From Haliotis cracherodii (taxonomy: Eukaryota), in the NCBI RefSeq assembly GCF_022045235.1, contig NW_027266308.1, positions 51,770,001 to 51,834,000 of the forward strand: 64,000 nucleotides of DNA, in the 5' to 3' direction. A program made the position numbers and the translations under genes. Position 1 is the first letter of the stretch; each line of letters begins with the position of its first letter. The notes under the pieces were generated by a model. It ran no database searches, was not told the origin of the DNA, and was given only the letters and a program-made list of their open reading frames with translations. Shown one piece after another: positions 2,606-55,202 of the stretch.

Positions 2606-4121
2606 ACTGAATAATGTCCCAACCATAAGCCTTCATCAGTCAACTGCACCACTGCATGTGTGCTAAAACCTTATCCATCACTTACACTCGAGACTCACAA
2701 CACAACTCATGACATGACATATGATCCCAAGCAGAAAAACACTATACTTAGTTTGTTAGGTGTTTATCACTGACGCCCATCACGACCCCCATACAGCTGC
2801 AGTGAGGTGTGCTATGGGAACACATTTGAACAGGTCTAGAAATACCACTGATCTACGGCTCCTCCAACAAAGAAAGACATGAACTGCATGTCCCTGTAAC
2901 ACACCTTAATAGGTTTTCTTCAAATTATCACTGCAAGTATTAATAACCTCATCAATGGATTAACTTCATGAGCACTTAAAGTAATTTATGACTCTTGGAA
3001 GAGGAAACGGGAATATTCTTATTCACAAAAATATCTTATACAAAATACATATTTAAACAATCATCCTAAGATTCATAGGTGGATCACGTGAATCACATCA
3101 TTCACAGTTAACGTACTCAGATTCCCTTTTTTTAAAAAACAATCATATCATAAAAAAATATTTATACTCATGCTCAGGCTGTCTCACATTTTCTAAATAT
3201 CTGGATGAGATCTAAAAAGTAATTCAACGCCCGTCGGAAAGAGTAACTGCCTTTTATCAAAGGGAATCTACTCTAACCTTAGGCTATGAGAAATCATGTT
3301 GGTTTAGAATCTGCCTGGTCTGTCATAACGTTACGAAGATGTACACACAGTGACAAAATGAAGCAAGGTAACAGTTCAGAAATATTTCAAAATACATATC
3401 TCTAAAGTTGCCAAATCTTGTTAAATGCCTCAGCCGCGTGCCACTTAGACACTGATTTTCAGTATTTTGGACTATTGTTTTGATAACAATTATTATTATC
3501 CCAGTAGTTTCTCCAGATTCCTGATGGTTAATTCTGACTCCATGGCCAGTTGACAAGGGCAACACCATTTTGCTTGAAAGTAGTACCTACATGACCTTTC
3601 ACAACATGAAATCTTTATCCTATATAACCCATATTGATATAGTTTTTATCCATTGGCTTTATCCTGCTAAGAAAACTATTTATTATATGATAAAGCAATA
3701 TCTCCAAAGAGATATGGCAACAATGAAATTGCATCACAATGCTTTGCAAACCATTGTGACATCATCATTATCATGATGTCACAATCAAATGACACCACTA
3801 ATCTCTCTGCTACTGAAACTAGTTGGCTGGACTAGTTACACTCAAGACACAGGATACTACAGTTTACAAACCGAAACAGCTGGAAAATGATTTTGGATGA
3901 TAAATAGAATCTCACCCTCATATATTACAAGCTCAAATATACGAAGACTTGTTGATAAAAAGTAACAATATCCTCAGGCAGCTTCAGATATTCTACCAAC
4001 TCATCATGATATATTTGATCTCGGAAGACACTTGCGTGAGATTCTCGAGTATCCCACGGTAGACACTTGTTCCTGCCACTCTCCGCTGAGCTTCTCTCCA
4101 CTAGACTTAATGCCCACTGAC

Positions 4122-4285
4122 CTGGTAGGTGGACATATTGTCCAGTCCTTTGGGTGGTTGGTTGACGTTGAACCAGGTACAAGGCTTGTGCCCTCCAGGG
4201 ACTCCCTCCGAAAACTCAAACACTCGGACATTGCGGATGTGCGGTGTCTGCTCGCCCACGTTAAAGGTTGTTAAGGCAAGGCTTT
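4122..4285 (-). CDS. SMP-domain gene exon 3 (ESLALTTFNVGEQTPHIRNVRVF...STYQ)
   Basis: Acceptor tttcag and donor CAG|GTCAGT. 164 nt, phase 1 to 0. Matches the SMP F-x-L/V-G-x-x-x-P-x-I-x-x-V motif. Confidence 0.85.
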
Positions 4286-4544
4286 CTGAAACACAAGCAT
4301 ACAGGCATGACATCACTGCAGACAACAAGTACTGATATTACTCATGTTTAGTTGCTCAATACCAAACATGAATTTACTGGCGCAGAGAGGAACCAAAGTG
4401 CCCAGGTTTGTCATTAAAGTCCACTAAAACACTGTGTTTACAATGTGTTGCTGACTGATTCTGTAGTTTCCCAAGGTTTGTTTGGTCCATGGCCTCATTC
4501 CGCAATCCAATCCTAGTGCTACAACTGCCATAACTCTAACATAG

Positions 4545-23131: not shown

Positions 23132-23385
23132 TATACAATAAAAATAGAGCCAGAAAAAGCTCTTCATTTTCAGACTGAAGAAATATAGACTTGGAGTTTT
23201 CGGATATTCGTTTCAGGGATTGTATGAGAAACTACATAAGCAGGTTTGCAGCTGTGTATAACTAAAACCTGTGTATATTCACTAAGTGTTGTAAAAGTAG
23301 AGCAAGTGGGCTGTATGTATGCATGTATCCAGTTTACCACATATTCAAGGACAACATGGTACAAGCTGCAAGGCCGTCAACTCAC

Positions 23386-23471
23386 CTAAAAATGTAGGTT
23401 TGATGGCAAGCAGTCGGTCATCCAACCTCTTCTTGACTAAATCTTCTATTGTCGAGGAGCTAAACACCCAC
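23386..23471 (-). CDS. SMP-domain gene exon 2 (WVFSSSTIEDLVKKRLDDRLLAIKPTFL)
   Basis: Acceptor tttcag and donor G|GTGAGT. 86 nt, phase 2 to 1, joins in frame with exons 1 and 3. Confidence 0.8.
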
Positions 23472-28066: not shown

Positions 28067-29848
28067 TGAACTAGCCAAAGGCAGCAAGACAGGAATGTGA
28101 AGCAGCCCTGCCTGCCCTATGTGATAGACATGTCACACACCACCGAGCACACCACTCACAACTTCTGTCCTGACACACCTCATCGCACAATGACACAGTA
28201 CTCACAATCCCTCAGCGGCATGCAAGTGCAATTGGGTTACAAATAATTCACAATTCCCATACAAAGTTCAGGTGATCCTGGGTGTGTTTTTCAGCCTGAA
28301 CAGTAACATATGCTAACAAATGTTATATTTGGGATATCACTTTCCCAGTAAAGTACAGATTCTCGAACTTTTTTTTTTGGTGGGGGAGGGGTCGAGTCCC
28401 ATGCAGGATTTAAACCCTCACTGCCAGAGTGAAGCACCTAATCGCCAACACACAAAGTCAGCGATCTAATGCACTCAGCCACCAAGGCTTCCACAAAATG
28501 AAAGTCTGACAACCGGTAGTCTGGATCATGTACTTTGTGTACCCCTCTAACAAGCGTAAATCAAATAGCGTTGATTGATGCTCATGATGTCAATCAATGG
28601 ATTGCCTGGTCCAGACTCGAATATTTACAGACTGCCGTCATATAGCTGGAATATTGCTGAGTGCGGCTCTAAACGACAAACAAACAACAAACAACCAACA
28701 AGTGTAAATTGGCACGGCTCCCATTGGCCAAAAGCTGACTTTGTGTGCTGGCGATTAGGTGCCTTATTCTGGCAGTGTGGGTTCGAATCCCACTTTCTAA
28801 ATGGCATTGTGAGTTCATAGTAACATAAGATGCCTGAAAGTGAATATATATAGTATGTGTACATTTAGCTGTTTAGTTTTCTTTATTCATTTCCAGTAAA
28901 CACCTGGATTTGATCTCCACAAAGATTGAGAAAGATGGCTCTTCAGCTCACCTGAATTTTACTGGAATATTTGCAACACAATATTCGAAGATGTTAAAGG
29001 TCATACTTAAAAGGGGGCAAACAAGAATATGCCAGCAACAAAAATGTATGAATATTTAATCATATGCCATAGTATAAATCATATTATATGCTATGTTGCA
29101 TACCACAATCTTACTGCATTTCAAATTTCATTTCATGATAATTCTAAAAATGCCTTAGCACATGGCAAAAATTACATTTTCAATATGGCTGCTATGGATG
29201 CCCTGTCTAAAATGGGACCTGAAGTCTGTTGACAGCTTTCAGAGCAATATAGCTTTAAAAAAACAATCAACCTTTCAGCATCACAGACCTCTAGGGCTGG
29301 GACAGGTCCAAATATACTACCAGAGGACCTACTCTCTATTACCACGATTACCCGACCATACCTGGGTATCCACTGTAGGTCTCAAGAGTTGGGTACTGAT
29401 TGGGAATTCTTTGACCATCGCCATGGAAAAATGTATTAGATACACGTATAAAACAATCTGGCAATGCATACACTGAAGTTTACTGAAGTTTTATCTTTAT
29501 TCAAACATATAAATTTCAGAAGGAATGAGTGCACAGTCAGAATATAATGCGAACATTGGTGACTTGTAGTGTAACAATCAAGTTCCAGTTAATTTTTGTC
29601 ATTAAACAATATCAATATATCACATGACTAACCACGGGTCCGGGTAGTCCTGTGGGTACCCACTCAGTACCCACCGGACACGAGCACCTGAGTTACCTGT
29701 CCAAGCCCTACAGACCACATTGTTTGAGAATTATTTTAAATATACAATTTGAAAAAAAACGCCTACAACTGATGGACATGTTAAGTGTCCACCTGCTTCG
29801 GCAGTATTTCAGTTCATGCTTTCCTGAGAGTATTGTCCTGTCTTGACA

Positions 29849-30968: not shown

Positions 30969-31240
30969 CCGTGAAGATCCTGGGTAGAACAGGTCTTCAG
31001 CAACCCATGCTTGCCGTGAAAGGCGACTATGCTTGTCTTAAAAGGCGACTAACGGGATCGGGTAGTCAGGCTCGCTGACATGGTTTATGCATGTCATCGT
31101 TTCTCAATTGCATGGATCGATGCTCATGATGTCAATCACTGGACGGTCTGGTCCAGACTTGATTATTTACAGACTGCTGTCATATAGCCGGAATATTGGT
31201 CAGTGCGACGTTAAACAAGAAACGAACAACAACAACAAAA
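30969..31240 (+). mobile_element. Retroposon family B, full length
   Basis: Starts ccgtgaagatcc..gggtagaa.aggtcttcagcaacccatgc, ends in an (aac)n tail. Confidence 0.85.
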
Positions 31241-31699
31241 AAGTTGATATTAAACTCTACTTATTGAAGGATATAGAGGGACAAACATATGTGGAACAAT
31301 TTTTGTCAAAGTACAAAATTATGTCCAATTAATCCTTTTAAGATTACCACCATGTTTTAGCAAAGAGGTGACATACCAAATATCAACATACCATGCTTAA
31401 GAAGCATTTTTATTGAAAACACACGTAAACTTTCTTCTGCAATATTAATTTTCAGCTTTAACATGTACCAAATAATATACCTTAAGAAACCAACACCCGT
31501 TTAACAAGCTGGAGCTACAACAAACATCCTGTTTAAGAATATATCATATTTCCTACGCAAATATTTACTGTGTGCATGTGCAGCCACTGTTAGAAACTGA
31601 TCATGCAAAATGTTCAAATAACCTGTCTTGCAAGGTGCAAAAAGCTGATGAAGATATTTCGAGACGTCTGCCAGACACTGACTGATGATGAGAGCAATT

Positions 31700-31761
<62 letters not shown>

Positions 31762-31849
31762 AAAATGAGGTAAATGTTCACTCGGTGTACATGTAATATA
31801 TAATAAAATAATAAAGTCCACGTTAGTCCATCATCTTCTTTATATCAGT

Positions 31850-31903
31850 TTCATATACATAGTACTTTCGCTGTCTCATGACAGCTCTTCAGTGTTACAA
31901 ATT
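31850..31903 (-). ncRNA. Type I minimal hammerhead ribozyme (Penelope-like element type)
   Basis: CUGAAGA core, stem II GCUGUC-auga-GACAGC, GAAA, palindromic helix III AGUACU, CUA cleavage triplet. Helix I is about 9 bp with one bulge (uuuguaaca / uguauaugaa). Confidence 0.8.
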
Positions 31904-31948
31904 CACTGAAGAGCTGTCATGAGACAGCGAAAGTACTATGTATATGAA
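31904..31948 (+). ncRNA. Mirror-image hammerhead core with truncated helix I
   Basis: cactgaagagctgtcatgagacagcgaaagtactatg. Identical core, but only about 2 bp of helix I remain. Confidence 0.7.
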
Positions 31949-32317
31949 ACTGATATAAAGAAGATGATGGACTAACGTGGACTTTATTATTTTATTATAT
32001 ATATATATATACACACACACATACACAACTTGTGATCTGTAAACTGAAGATAAACCCATGACAGGCTTGACAGCCATCTCAGTTGGAAAACTTTACCACC
32101 GACATCACAAGGGCATGTAGGCATATGAAAATGTAGAAACACATCTGAACAAATAAAAGAGCATTTTTTTCATCATCAGAAATTGTATGAGTCCCATCCT
32201 GATACTCCTTTTGTCATCTTGGTTCTCCTTAGATCTGTCTACCTGATATTACCAGGTTTTTTCAACATTTTTATAATAAAAACATCCTTAGCTATCCTTA
32301 AGCTTTCTTATAGCATA

Positions 32318-32663
32318 CCGTATTCAACGTGATAAGCGCCCCGCTCTAATAAGCTCACATGGCGATATTTGCTAATATATTGGCTAATGGACAATCCCAA
32401 TTAGCACCCCTTCCGATTGATCAATGTACACAAGACTTATTTATGCGTGTACAATACACACTCGTTAGTTATATGCACCCTTAATTAATCATGTTAATGG
32501 CAATTAAATTCTGGAAAAAATAAATCTGTTGTACATAAACATTTCAGCTGTCATAAATCACGAAATTTGTCTTTCAACTCTAGTTTTTTCACCAAAATAA
32601 TTTCTAAGAGCCCCCTATTTCTAATTTTTAGAGCGCCCTGGGCGCTTATTACGTCGAATACGG
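32318..32663. mobile_element. Tc2-like MITE, same family as 11753-12085, opposite orientation
   Basis: TIR ccgtattcaacgt / acgtcgaatacgg, TA TSD, internal homology. Confidence 0.85.
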
Positions 32664-34589
32664 TATTTGCCCATTTTAATCTGGTTTATGTATCCAGCTA
32701 CTTTGCATGGGTGTTACTAACTTTAGTAATCTTGTAGTTTGTACCAAGAGCCAAATGATATTATGGGGTATCAAATGATTCATTGTGGTTTGATGTATAA
32801 TATGCATGGCCCTTAAAATAACTGTCCATTTTGGATTGCACACAGAGCACAAAAGGATTTAACCAGATACGCTAGATATATATCTTCACAAAATCATTTT
32901 ATACAAGCAATGTCACAGTGACTCCCTTGAGAAAGCAGAGCTGCAAACCTCGACCTAGGTGGAATATTGTTATAGCCGAGCAAACGTTCCCGGATTTCCC
33001 ATTGAAACGTATATTATTATGCCCCTGAAAGAGGTATACCTTTTGTATGCATTTTGATAAAGTTTAATGATGTAGAATCAAAATAAATTTGTCGTAATGG
33101 ATTTCACATGGACGTTAATCTAGAAATTTGGAACAAAATATGCATCGGAAACACCGACATGTCTGTATATATAAAAGTAGTTGTCCATACATCCTCAGCT
33201 GGGAGTGATCTCCCTTGTTGTCACTAAACGTAAACACAAACGCACAATGGTCACAGGAAATAGTTAATGAGATAAATACTGCTCATGCAAGACATATCAC
33301 ACAGTTAAAGTTGGTATTGTAGCGAATATAAATTCAAATTATAAAGATTTATCAAAATATACAGTGAATATGCTTCGGGAAATGCCGACCCACACATTTC
33401 ATTGTTAGCAGCGTGCCACTTGCCATGTGTATCTTTATTATACTAGTAGGATAAATTAAATATTTTGGCTAAATGATCGTAATGACGACAAACGTTGTGT
33501 AATATATATATTTTTCTTATTTAATAAGACCAAAAACAAAAGTGCTAGTGGTATGAGTTAGGCCTAGACATGGCTACACCGTGCCGCACTGCCAAAGGTT
33601 AATACTGCTTTCCTCCCCGCTAATAATGATTACAAAGGCGTCTGTCGGTTTACACGTTCTAATACTAGAAAACACAAAGAAAGCAAGTTGAATATTTTCT
33701 GTAAGAAAAACACAAGCAAAGATTTATTTACAGATTAATGAAGGAACCTTGCAATTCAAGCGACCCCAGCCCTCTAAAGCCGGAACCAGTAAGAAAAAAT
33801 AAAGTTCTCTTTTAATGATGTACACGAACAGTGTCTGATTTGTGGGCGACAGGACGGGGACATCACATTAGGAACAATCCATGGTTCAAAATGTGTAGTC
33901 TCAGCTGCACACAGTCGTCAAGATGAAGTATTGAGTCGCATCATAAACGTCAAGCATGATGATTCACTGACATTATCATACCTAGATCTGTCAAATCAAT
34001 AAAGTGGTCGTCTTGTTTAATCTCTGGCTTCAAAAAGCATCGTGGTTACAACAAACTACTCACAATTCAGTCTTTTGAACGAGCTGTTGACCTAAATGCA
34101 GCAGCAATAGGATTGGGGGACATGGGTGTAATTGGGAGGATAAAAGGTGAAGTGAGTGAGTGAGTATGGTTTTAAGCCGCTTTTAGCAATATTCCAGCAA
34201 TATCACGGCGAGAAGGTTTATATCATGAGACTTGTATGAGACGATTTCTGAGAGCAGCCAATCAAGTACAACATATGAATGACAATGACGATGATCACAC
34301 GATTTCTGAGAAATCTGTGTATGATGAGGCATTTGCAACTAGTGGAGGAGATAGAAATCGATCTTTTCACAGAAGGAAAAGCTCTATCAATGGCAAAATT
34401 CACCACAAGATATAATGAACTCATAACAAATCAGTCCTCAAACAACAGCAACTACAAAAGTGACAAACTTAAAACGAGACTCTGTCTTTTTTCGGCGACA
34501 GAATATCAGTGTGGAGTATTGCTGGCAAGGGGTCACCAAACATGTTACCCAGCAGTTCCATAACTCTGGCTGATGTAATCCACGCAGCT

Positions 34590-35215: not shown

Positions 35216-36403
35216 ACGCTGTGAACGACGTTGTGATTGTTGTGAACGCTGCGAACGCTGTGAACGCTGTGAAGGTATCTCGTTGAAACTGTTAAAATAT
35301 TTGTTTATACTGCGCGAAATTGTCTAACAATGTAACATACCATAAAGGGTAGTAGCTATAGCTTCATGGATAAAGCCATGTTAGTAGTTAAGGAATTATT
35401 CACTTTTAACTGTCTTCGCACAGGATTACACTGATACTTAAGTACAATATAAGTACAATACCTATTTGGATGACTTATTGTACAAGCTGTTCTTCAGAAT
35501 CTATATCTTTAAAGATTCTGTGGCCATCAAGTCATAATGACTCGCTATGAAATAATTTACAAGCAATGAAGTATGTATTGCCGTCATTTTATTTCGGAAT
35601 AGCATAGAAAATTGACTGAAATTTACCTACATTCAAATGCCTGATAAAAAAAAACTGTCCACATCGTTTTTATTACGACATGCATTTTTGTAATCCATAT
35701 GTTTCAAGCTTTCATTTGATATATAATATGACTATACCTCTTCCCGGGGCAAAATGATCATCACTTTCTGGTCTCGTTTCCTGCTCTATTAATACCTAAT
35801 TAAGACTCAAGTAGAACTAACACTCTTTGACTTGTCATTGCACTGAAAATTTATTCGTTCACATGTGAGATCAACAAAGGTGCAGAGGAATAATGTCAGT
35901 TCTCATTGTCAGCTGTGCTGCATCAAGGTAATATGCTGACCGGATTACAGGTGGGAATATACTGTTCACAGAGATATTCGCCTTCACTGTATGTCAATAA
36001 GTGACGCTCTGCTGGCTAAGCAGTCAAGCGTGTACATTTCAGCAGTTCATGCTGGGACGAATATCAAGGGCAACTGTTCAAGCAGGAAACACAAGCTGCT
36101 TCTGCAGGCTACATGCACTTTGGGGAGCCTGACAATTCTTTTAGAAGTCTAAATTTGTCTATCAGTGTGATACAAAAAGACAAATATTGATTTCATAGTC
36201 GAACAATACATGACAAAAACAATAAAAGTGTCATAGATCAACCAAGAGTGTTAGATATTTCATGATATGTTAACTGATGCTTTTTACTGAGTTCTAATGA
36301 AGCTGTCACATTGCAAATCCCACCTGTCAATATCCAATGTTGACATCGAATGCTAACGCCACGCGTCCGAACTCACACCTGTTAAGACAAAACATGAACT
36401 TAC

Positions 36404-36726
36404 CATCTATTCAGCAGAAAGTTAAGCCATTCCACAGTCTCGCTCTGTCGCAATGCTCTTTTTCTGTGTAAAGTAGCCTCTTCAAAATCCAAGTGTCTTT
36501 TGATAATCCGACTGATCTTAGCTCTCCATATCACAAATAAACAAGAAACTAGAAAGAATACCCACAGGAATGAACATCCATAGCAGCCGAGCCCCCATGC
36601 AATAGCAACCAAGGCTGCAACCAGAATATACATTCCAGTGAGGCTTGTCACAGCCTCTTTCTGTCCATCCCTGGCTGCTTTTATGTCCACATTTTTTACA
36701 TCACCATTTGCAACTTTCGTCGCCAT
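36404..36726 (-). CDS. Extended synaptotagmin/tricalbin-like SMP-domain protein, coding exon 1 (membrane anchor and start of SMP domain)
   Basis: ATG at 36726 (MATKVANG...). Long hydrophobic segment GMYILVAALVAIAWGLGCYGCSFLWVFFLVSCLFVIW followed by ETVEWLNFLLNRW, the typical E-x-x-E-W-L-N start of an SMP domain. Donor TG|GTAAGT, phase 2. Confidence 0.85.
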
Positions 36727-37199
36727 CCTGAATTTACCGCTTACTACGGTTACCACCGTCTAGTGTACCATGTTGACATGTCCAATCGGTTCCTGACTAA
36801 CATTTGACCTCACAGCGATAAAGTATTTTCGCAACGACTTGTTAACATGTTAAGACTTATTTGAGTCGTCTACTGGAGCATAGCTTGGTGCATGGTTACG
36901 GGGTTTTCACAGGGGGAATTACTCTTTCTAAATCTAACGCGGACCCAACACTTATGGAGATACCAACACTAAGTGTGACTATTACTTTACTGACCAATGG
37001 GCTAATGACTTTAAAAAGGGCGTGGCGATCGTCGCAAGTCAACAGACATATAGACAAACAGGTGTCTAAGAACAATGTGTGTACAGTACAATTTTCATAT
37101 AACATTCAAGATACTCAACACATAAAATATACATACATCCATAAAGGAATTACGAGATATTATGCATGAAATAGACAAAACGAGAGAGCTTACACGAGT

Positions 37200-55036: not shown

Positions 55037-55202
55037 GGGGCGGTTGGGTAGCCTAGTGGTTAAAGCGTTCGCTCGTCACGCCGAAGACCCGGGTTCGATT
55101 CCCGACATGGGTACAATGTGTGAAGCCCATTTCTGGTGTCCCCCGCCGTGATATTGCTGGAATATTGCTAAAAGCGGCGTAAAATCAAACTCACTCACTC
55201 AC
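55037..55202 (+). mobile_element. SINE family A, present only in duplication copy 2
   Basis: 13-bp TSD tctccctgcagtg. Empty site near 48612 in copy 1. Confidence 0.92.

Follow-up and report, generated by a model that had tools for sequence, protein, structure and literature searches.

A perfect palindrome that carries two copies of a hammerhead ribozyme motif is located in a 64,000-nt stretch of the Haliotis cracherodii genome (NCBI RefSeq assembly GCF_022045235.1, contig NW_027266308.1, positions 51,770,001 to 51,834,000 of the forward strand), referred to below as the window, within an intron of a gene for a protein with SMP and C2 domains. The analysis described here indicates that this palindrome is very probably a single insertion product of a canonical endonuclease-positive (EN+) Penelope-like element (PLE), that is, an element encoding a reverse transcriptase (RT) with a C-terminal GIY-YIG domain. 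A repeat search of the window identifies two inverted arms of 99 nt each (31796-31894 and 31904-32002) that are 100% complementary and have 9 nt between them. The perfect 207-bp palindrome reported in the original prediction is thus present in the assembled sequence, and the inverted duplication spans the element only, with unique flanks outside. The locus is comprised of the following features:

31702-31759, no strand: (TA)29 microsatellite, the left remainder of the insertion target (direct sequence reading).
31760-31795, minus strand: 36-nt PLE tail, a 3' extension found on the minus-sense copy only.
31796-31898, minus strand: T-arm, a 5'-truncated copy of the terminal 103 nt of the PLE that carries one substitution (31896); it aligns at 99% identity with 3'-end positions 1-103 of the long reference copy L031.
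31899-31903, no strand: 5-nt filler where the two arms meet head to head; its counterpart in the sister locus (contig C1) has 4 nt.
31904-32002, plus strand: N-arm, the last 99 nt of the PLE, 5'-truncated, tail-less and flush with (TA)n; 100% identical to positions 99-1 of the reference copy.
32003-32011, no strand: (TA)n followed by (CA)n, the right remainder of the target (direct sequence reading).

The complete unit consists of the tail, 103 nt, 5 nt and 99 nt, with (TA)n on both sides, and contains no open reading frame (ORF). The earlier description of a palindrome lying between (TA)n tracts is accurate in that tracts are found on both sides; the left one, however, is not adjacent to the palindrome, as the 36-nt non-repeat segment 31760-31795 intervenes. 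The spacer, which had been thought to supply one strand of ribozyme helix I, is resolved into four nucleotides that belong to the element, one of them substituted, and the 5-nt filler.

Searching the window's own 1.18-Gb assembly with a 108-nt arm query produced 59 scored matches among 468 candidates. In the genome there are 234 exact occurrences of a 26-mer taken from the arm versus zero of the reversed control, and therefore the arm is not a chance sequence. The arm copies form convergent inverted pairs with the AT-rich end outward and a spacing from a few bases to 3.3 kb; no divergent pair is present among the first 100 places listed for the 26-mer, nor was any found with the reversed control pattern. 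This genome-wide arm search led to the parent Penelope element that had been anticipated, with both an RT and a GIY-YIG domain. In the 3.5-kb pair L031, a 765-codon frame matches Pfam RVT_1 (PF00078, 29.6 bits, at the cut-off) and, C-terminally, GIY-YIG (PF01541, 30.5 bits versus a cut-off of 22.6 bits). The last 188 codons of this frame are found a second time, in an inverted and 5'-truncated copy, and L031 therefore consists of a long copy and a 5'-truncated copy that meets it head to head. The window arms align at 99-100% identity to the last 103 and 99 nt downstream of the L031 ORF stop. A Cys-rich linker (C-x4-C-x2-C) recognized by eye just upstream of GIY-YIG in the L031 translation resembles the Neptune/Nematis-type motif (PMC8557442).

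The same anatomy recurs in other copies of the family. Inverted pairs examined by alignment (n=16) span from 184 to 3508 bp. The same 36-nt tail, with at most two substitutions, flanks one arm in all 17 loci examined, (TA)n follows the tail in 16 of 17 other copies, and the opposite arm is flush with (TA)n. Single arms, with or without the tail, are also present in the genome. No direct tandem of the pseudo-long terminal repeats (pLTRs) was found among the copies sampled, and the family occurs mostly in the inverted arrangement. The window arms are 97-100% identical to hundreds of family copies, and a genome search for related PLE ORFs gave 71 scored matches among 1675 first-look candidates, with many related and diverged ORFs. 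The parent PLE family is apparently young, and it is abundant in the genome. A more complex arrangement in the same PLE family was observed at L094 (G000:C1:84228400-84228800), where two direct-orientation copies lie 161 nt apart together with an inverted fragment; it may represent a seed of tandem hammerhead arrays.

PLE insertions are characterized by frequent 5'-truncation, an adjacent inverted 5'-truncated copy, a one-sided tail of 30-40 bp, a bias towards microsatellites, and hammerheads in the terminal repeats (PMC8557442). The (TA)n target has been noted for Naiads, and the microsatellite bias for PLEs in general (PMC8557442). Canonical EN+ PLEs (Penelope/Poseidon, Neptune, Nematis) share with the family described here the RT and GIY-YIG ORF, 5'-truncation, the abutting inverted copy, the one-sided tail, the terminal hammerhead and the (TA)n target. 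Two differences are observed: i) in the window both copies are cut to ~100 nt, leaving no ORF or promoter, and ii) the family as a whole is mostly in the inverted arrangement. The inverted truncated copy proposed in the original prediction is recovered as two 5'-truncated PLE ends joined head to head, and the structure is a normal product of PLE integration, not a special ribozyme arrangement.

The variation of such junctions was assessed by a census of short head-to-head pairs, using 15-mer anchors from both arms with stepped gaps. It yielded 55 pairs (5+20+25+5; L095-L149) with inner spans of 48-231 nt, and both arms of each pair were measured against the long copy. Exactly one tail is found in 52 of the 55 pairs and two tails in none; TA-rich flanks are present on one side in 43 and on the other side in 41. 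The junctions are distinct and the 5'-truncation is variable across the set. The lengths of the T-arm and N-arm are correlated (Spearman 0.65, p=1.6e-7), and they differ by at most 2 nt in 14 of 52 pairs versus 4.0 expected under shuffling (p=4e-5), with neither arm being consistently longer. A 2-nt indel that distinguishes subfamilies, the two states of which are equally common, is in the same state on both arms of every informative pair (27 of 27). Microhomology overlaps occur at 20 junctions, often at local palindromes such as helix II, and at least 4 filler bases are present at 19. The two arms of the window are identical to each other, as in 10 of the 55 pairs, and therefore the window pair is among the youngest of the set.

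The arm ends fall into three clusters (48-55, 76-83 and 96-103), matching the edges of the hammerhead helices in position. A cluster at ~100 nt was first seen in a sample biased by the 108-nt query; after re-examination by the exact-pattern census, 96-103 was retained as one of the three. The ends of the window arms (99 and 103, with filler of 5) fall into the largest cluster and the most populated class, together with L121, L122, L123, L128 and L136, just 5' of the ribozyme core. Stops thus appear to be favoured at the 3' edges of the ribozyme helices, where helix I and helix II are entered, and just past the core. The 83/99 junction was found at three loci, one of which has its tail on the opposite arm. 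Identical microhomology junctions are shared by unrelated loci in four groups (L104 and L137 versus L126; L131 versus L141; L120 and L130; L135 and L142), and in two of these groups the arm that bears the tail differs. Descent is therefore not the only source of preferred junctions, which also arise independently. We also considered hammerhead-cleaved RNA as the template. This would predict arms of 64 nt, and the idea was rejected, since only 2-3 of the 110 arm ends lie at 62-64 and no enrichment is visible.

The hammerhead motif is placed 46-116 nt from the 3' end of the element, which explains its presence in the window, where both arms carry it:

31904-31957, plus strand: hammerhead motif, plus copy; CUGAAGA 31906-31912, helix II 31913-31928, GAAA 31929-31932, GUAC 31933-31936, UA 31937-31938.
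31841-31898, minus strand: hammerhead motif, minus copy; core 31892-31886, helix II 31885-31870, GAAA 31869-31866, GUAC 31865-31862.

Direct reading and a script parse agree with the original prediction that each arm has a full core, with a 6-bp helix II (GCUGUC/GACAGC, loop AUGA), a palindromic GUAC helix III and a UA site. Cleavage is predicted between 31938 and 31939 in the plus copy and between 31860 and 31859 in the minus copy, the latter being the minus-strand site proposed earlier. Rfam models, suggested as a check of the motif, did not recognize it: no hammerhead model reached its gathering score in the window, and none gave a match at E<=10 on 31700-32100, on a full-context copy or on a family B copy. 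Sub-threshold Rfam hits to microRNA precursors (MIR837, 78 bits versus a gathering score of 117 bits) were rejected as generic matches to a long perfect hairpin.

Evidence for the motif comes from the comparison of two PLE families by a core-anchored parse; a MAFFT alignment, in which 10 columns were out of register, was not used for covariation. The second family (family B), with 48% amino acid identity in the ORF, has CUGAUGA, an unrelated 9-bp helix II, GAAA, GCGC and UA. The core is invariant across 34 distinct family sequences except for position 7. Helix II differs in sequence and pairs in both families (GCUGUC/GACAGC in family A, the family of the window, and GACUCGUAC/GUACGAGUU in family B), with G-U variants within family A (L043, L079). 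The proximal helix I changes in a compensated manner from UACA/UGUA in family A to GGC/GCC in family B. The sequence of helix III and loop 3 is self-complementary, being GUAC in family A and GCGC in family B, with the exceptions of L086 (family A) and L068 (family B). These compensatory changes between the two PLE families support the hammerhead motif at the level of the family. The family B hammerhead was observed ~100 nt downstream of its ORF (loci L045, L048, L067, L068, L071, L073 and L074).

The state of the motif in the window is different. In full context, the minimum free energy (MFE) fold of family A is a three-way junction with a helix I of 4+3+7 bp whose 5' strand extends to arm position ~116, so that full-length members have 4 proximal pairs and ~10 distal pairs (3+7). 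The window retains 2 proximal pairs in the plus copy and 3 in the minus copy, and the MFE fold of the isolated arms, at about -20 kcal/mol, lacks helix I. Neither predicted ribozyme of the window is complete, as both are cut within the 5' strand of helix I, and the minus-strand copy loses the status of a complete ribozyme that it had been given. Because most of that strand is gone and the sense copy would be paired to its antisense in a 99-bp hairpin, the copies are unlikely to work, and the locus is most likely inert as a ribozyme. The hammerhead motifs are passengers and not the reason for the structure. The only plausible activities of the locus are those generic to a long perfect hairpin or palindrome, such as double-stranded RNA processing and DNA instability.

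Hammerheads of PLEs are described as minimal type I ribozymes with a palindromic helix III that are thought to act as dimers and have low activity (PMC4209133, PMC6765202). The minimal hammerheads of Cervera and de la Pena (2014; PMC4209133) and the motif described here share the full core, G10.1-C11.1 closing a longer-than-usual 6-bp helix II, a 4-nt palindromic GUAC able to pair between copies, the CUA triplet and an open helix I. The family motif differs in having no unpaired base between positions 9 and 10.1. Its helix I in full-length members is long (4+3+7 bp in the MFE fold) in comparison with the short 4-5 bp of schistosome minimal hammerheads, whereas that of the window is cut to 2-3 bp. 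Animal non-LTR retrozymes are tandem hammerhead repeats that give circular RNAs and are derived from PLE pLTRs (bioRxiv 10.64898/2026.07.22.740005). Like the window, they are ORF-less PLE-derived sequences with type I hammerheads. They are, in contrast, direct head-to-tail repeats in which the monomer is bounded by two sense ribozymes, whereas the window has one sense and one antisense ribozyme per strand and would release no monomer. The earlier proposal of a mini-Penelope or retrozyme-like insertion therefore holds for a recent ORF-less Penelope derivative and not for a retrozyme, since the pair is inverted and not a direct tandem.

We propose the following sequence of events for the window. 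The nuclease of the element would cut a (TA)n microsatellite in intron 1 of the SMP/C2 gene, and both DNA ends would prime reverse transcription at the 3' end of the element RNA. A distal start site would give the copy with the 36-nt tail, and a proximal AUAUAU start site the tail-less copy. Both cDNAs would halt ~100 nt in, just after the hammerhead core, and would then be joined head to head with a few filler bases. Purified PLE protein is able to cleave and extend both target strands, and it initiates reverse transcription at a pair of neighbouring internal sites, the interval between which is the tail (PMC11167929). From the shared indel states and the coupled lengths of the arms we infer that both arms came from one template in one concerted event. 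Two routes would fit: twin priming in which one cDNA then jumps onto the other, and snap-back self-copying.

In the twin priming of L1, as reportedly described by Ostertag and Kazazian in 2001, both target strands prime cDNA on the same template, and the inverted 5'-truncated product is joined by microhomology or filler. The second priming is said to be internal on the same RNA, so that contiguous sequence is inverted without duplication of the 3' end. The window differs in that both arms copy the same 3'-terminal segment, hence the palindrome.

Several observations weigh against this reconstruction or leave room around it. The mechanistic steps are derived from the anatomy of the end product and from the published in vitro biochemistry of another PLE, Poseidon of the green anole. 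The coupling of arm lengths fits a snap-back or self-copying route as well as twin priming. The failure of the hammerhead models even at the relaxed E-value threshold belongs here too. The assignment of the palindrome to a single insertion of a canonical EN+ PLE remains very probable, and a more ambitious extension is advanced tentatively, as one that may well prove wrong: the short pairs might record a concerted step of PLE integration that has not been described, in which one template is used, arm lengths are coupled, stops are set by the ribozyme fold, and the resulting palindrome can be recopied as a block.

The possibility of block copying is raised by a sister locus at C1:63015816-63016021 (L002/L121), the only other place in the genome where the window junction is found. 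Its arms end at the same positions (103/99) and its filler of 4 nt is shared with the window, the window copy having one substitution and one extra base; the T-arm at this locus matches at 100%. The flanks of the two loci are unrelated. Segmental duplication was rejected as the source of the sister locus, since the homology ends at the unit plus the TA repeats. All other filler-bearing junctions differ from one another, and descent is favoured for the window and sister pair because the filler is shared. These features suggest one round of block copying of the entire unit, through retrotransposition of a unit-bearing transcript or through repair synthesis from one (TA)n locus to another. Because filler-free junctions recur independently, a hot-spot effect may account for some of the resemblance.

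Taken further, these observations raise the alternative of a hairpin mini-Penelope, in which the tail and palindrome together form a template that is copied as a block by the PLE machinery, for example from an intron transcript. This reading is compatible with the proposed origin and adds to it ongoing mobility. It draws on the shared 103/99 ends and filler in unrelated flanks, on the distinctness of the other filler junctions, and on the orientation of the window unit within the host gene, which would give an RNA with a proper 3' end (the sense arm) and the tail. On the other hand, only two copies exist in the genome, and some similarity is expected given that positions 99-103 form the main stop cluster. 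Junctions also recur independently, as illustrated by the 83/99 junction, which occurs at three loci, one with an opposite-arm tail that is incompatible with descent. The two loci would look the same if repair synthesis had copied the DNA from one (TA)n locus to another. We regard ongoing mobility of the unit as a serious possibility, with the balance tilted against it.

The host gene was mapped by homology. The ORF 36403-36756 (minus strand) matches the N-termini of proteins of 1000-1250 amino acids in a phmmer search, the best match being P0001, which has C2 and SMP domains. The intron that contains the palindrome is bounded by two exons:

36403-36714, minus strand: host SMP/C2 exon 1, tblastn 68% identity to P0001 residues 6-108; upstream intron boundary.
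23378-23470, minus strand: host SMP/C2 exon 2, tblastn 81% identity to P0001 residues 109-139; downstream boundary of intron 1.

Further consecutive exons were found at 4119-4286, 1915-2010 and 271-435, all on the minus strand, by tblastn of four homologues. This places the palindrome within the ~12.9-kb intron 1 of a minus-strand SMP/C2 gene, and the earlier placement in an intron of an SMP gene, with the complete-core minus copy in the sense of the pre-mRNA, is borne out by these exons. In the host pre-mRNA the order is antisense arm, loop, sense arm and tail. For the 99-bp hairpin the predicted energy is -170 kcal/mol (z = -30 versus shuffles), compared with about -20 kcal/mol for an isolated arm, and the hairpin would be predicted to outcompete the ribozyme fold. 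A ribozyme silenced by its own hairpin, as had been suggested, is therefore reasonable on thermodynamic grounds, but its function would be crippled in the absence of the hairpin as well.

In animals, Dicer and ADAR act on long perfect hairpin RNAs. A functional intronic hairpin can thus be envisaged, in which the 99-bp double-stranded RNA would be processed into endogenous small interfering RNAs (siRNAs) silencing the PLE family, or would be edited by ADAR, with a beneficial or regulatory role for the host. The predicted stability of the hairpin and its position in the intron of a minus-strand gene are in line with such a role, and any small RNAs would match the hundreds of copies that are 97-100% identical to the arms. 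Nevertheless, at least 55 similar hairpins occur genome-wide as by-products of insertion, nothing singles out that of the window, and the sub-threshold Rfam microRNA matches are generic; we consider this role unlikely. The proposed PLE insertion is also strongly preferred over two further explanations that have hardly any probability left. A miniature inverted-repeat transposable element (MITE) or foldback DNA transposon with terminal inverted repeats (TIRs) of ~100 bp, inserting at TA, would account for the inverted terminal repeats, the variable internal length and the TA-rich flanks, but is already contradicted by the asymmetric ends (the 36-nt tail at exactly one end in 52 of 55 pairs), by the identity of the supposed TIRs with the 3' end of an RT/GIY-YIG retroelement whose inner ends vary as 5'-truncations, by the occurrence of single arms with or without the tail, and by the fact that no transposase was found. 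Palindromes are a known class of assembly artefact, yet a fold-back such as a chimeric palindromic long read is scarcely credible for an inverted duplication that is confined to the element without its unique flanks, that differs between its two sides in the tail, that has 55 analogous pairs on many contigs, each with its own junction, and a sister locus with the same unit, and whose architecture is the published norm for PLEs (PMC8557442).

Other features were noted elsewhere in the window. A borderline Rfam tRNA match at 55048-55106 on the plus strand (29.7 bits, gathering score 29, limited to model positions 7-64) is the sole hit at gathering score in the window and may be the head of a tRNA-derived short interspersed element (SINE) rather than a tRNA gene. 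A 27-nt inverted repeat (32315-32341 and 32640-32666, 93%, 298 nt between the arms) lies ~300 bp downstream of the palindrome and may be a small TIR element. Similar spurious ORF translations, with a motif like PDLIIYRLLSYSRNI, were observed at 28575-28820 and 31087-31332 of the window and at 2164-2418 of L031, which indicates a probable further dispersed repeat family that is present twice in the host intron and once beside the long PLE copy.

The locus itself is of little importance, being typical of the dead-on-arrival Penelope insertions in which this genome abounds. As a perfect 99-bp hairpin in an intron, it is also a candidate for producing siRNAs that target the element family, which is apparently young. 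For annotation, perfect palindromes with hammerhead cores in this genome are to be regarded as twin 5'-truncated PLE ends and not as ribozyme genes, MITEs or microRNA precursors. Specialists are likeliest to be interested in the junction census. Its 55 junctions provide a clean natural data set that bears on how PLEs build their inverted structures, as the tail is one-sided, the arm lengths are coupled, the template is shared and the stops form three clusters. They are also in line with the extension of both target strands by PLE protein in vitro. If the reading based on the ribozyme fold is true, the hammerhead fold would shape where the reverse transcriptase stops or jumps, and the palindromic product could be recopied as a block.

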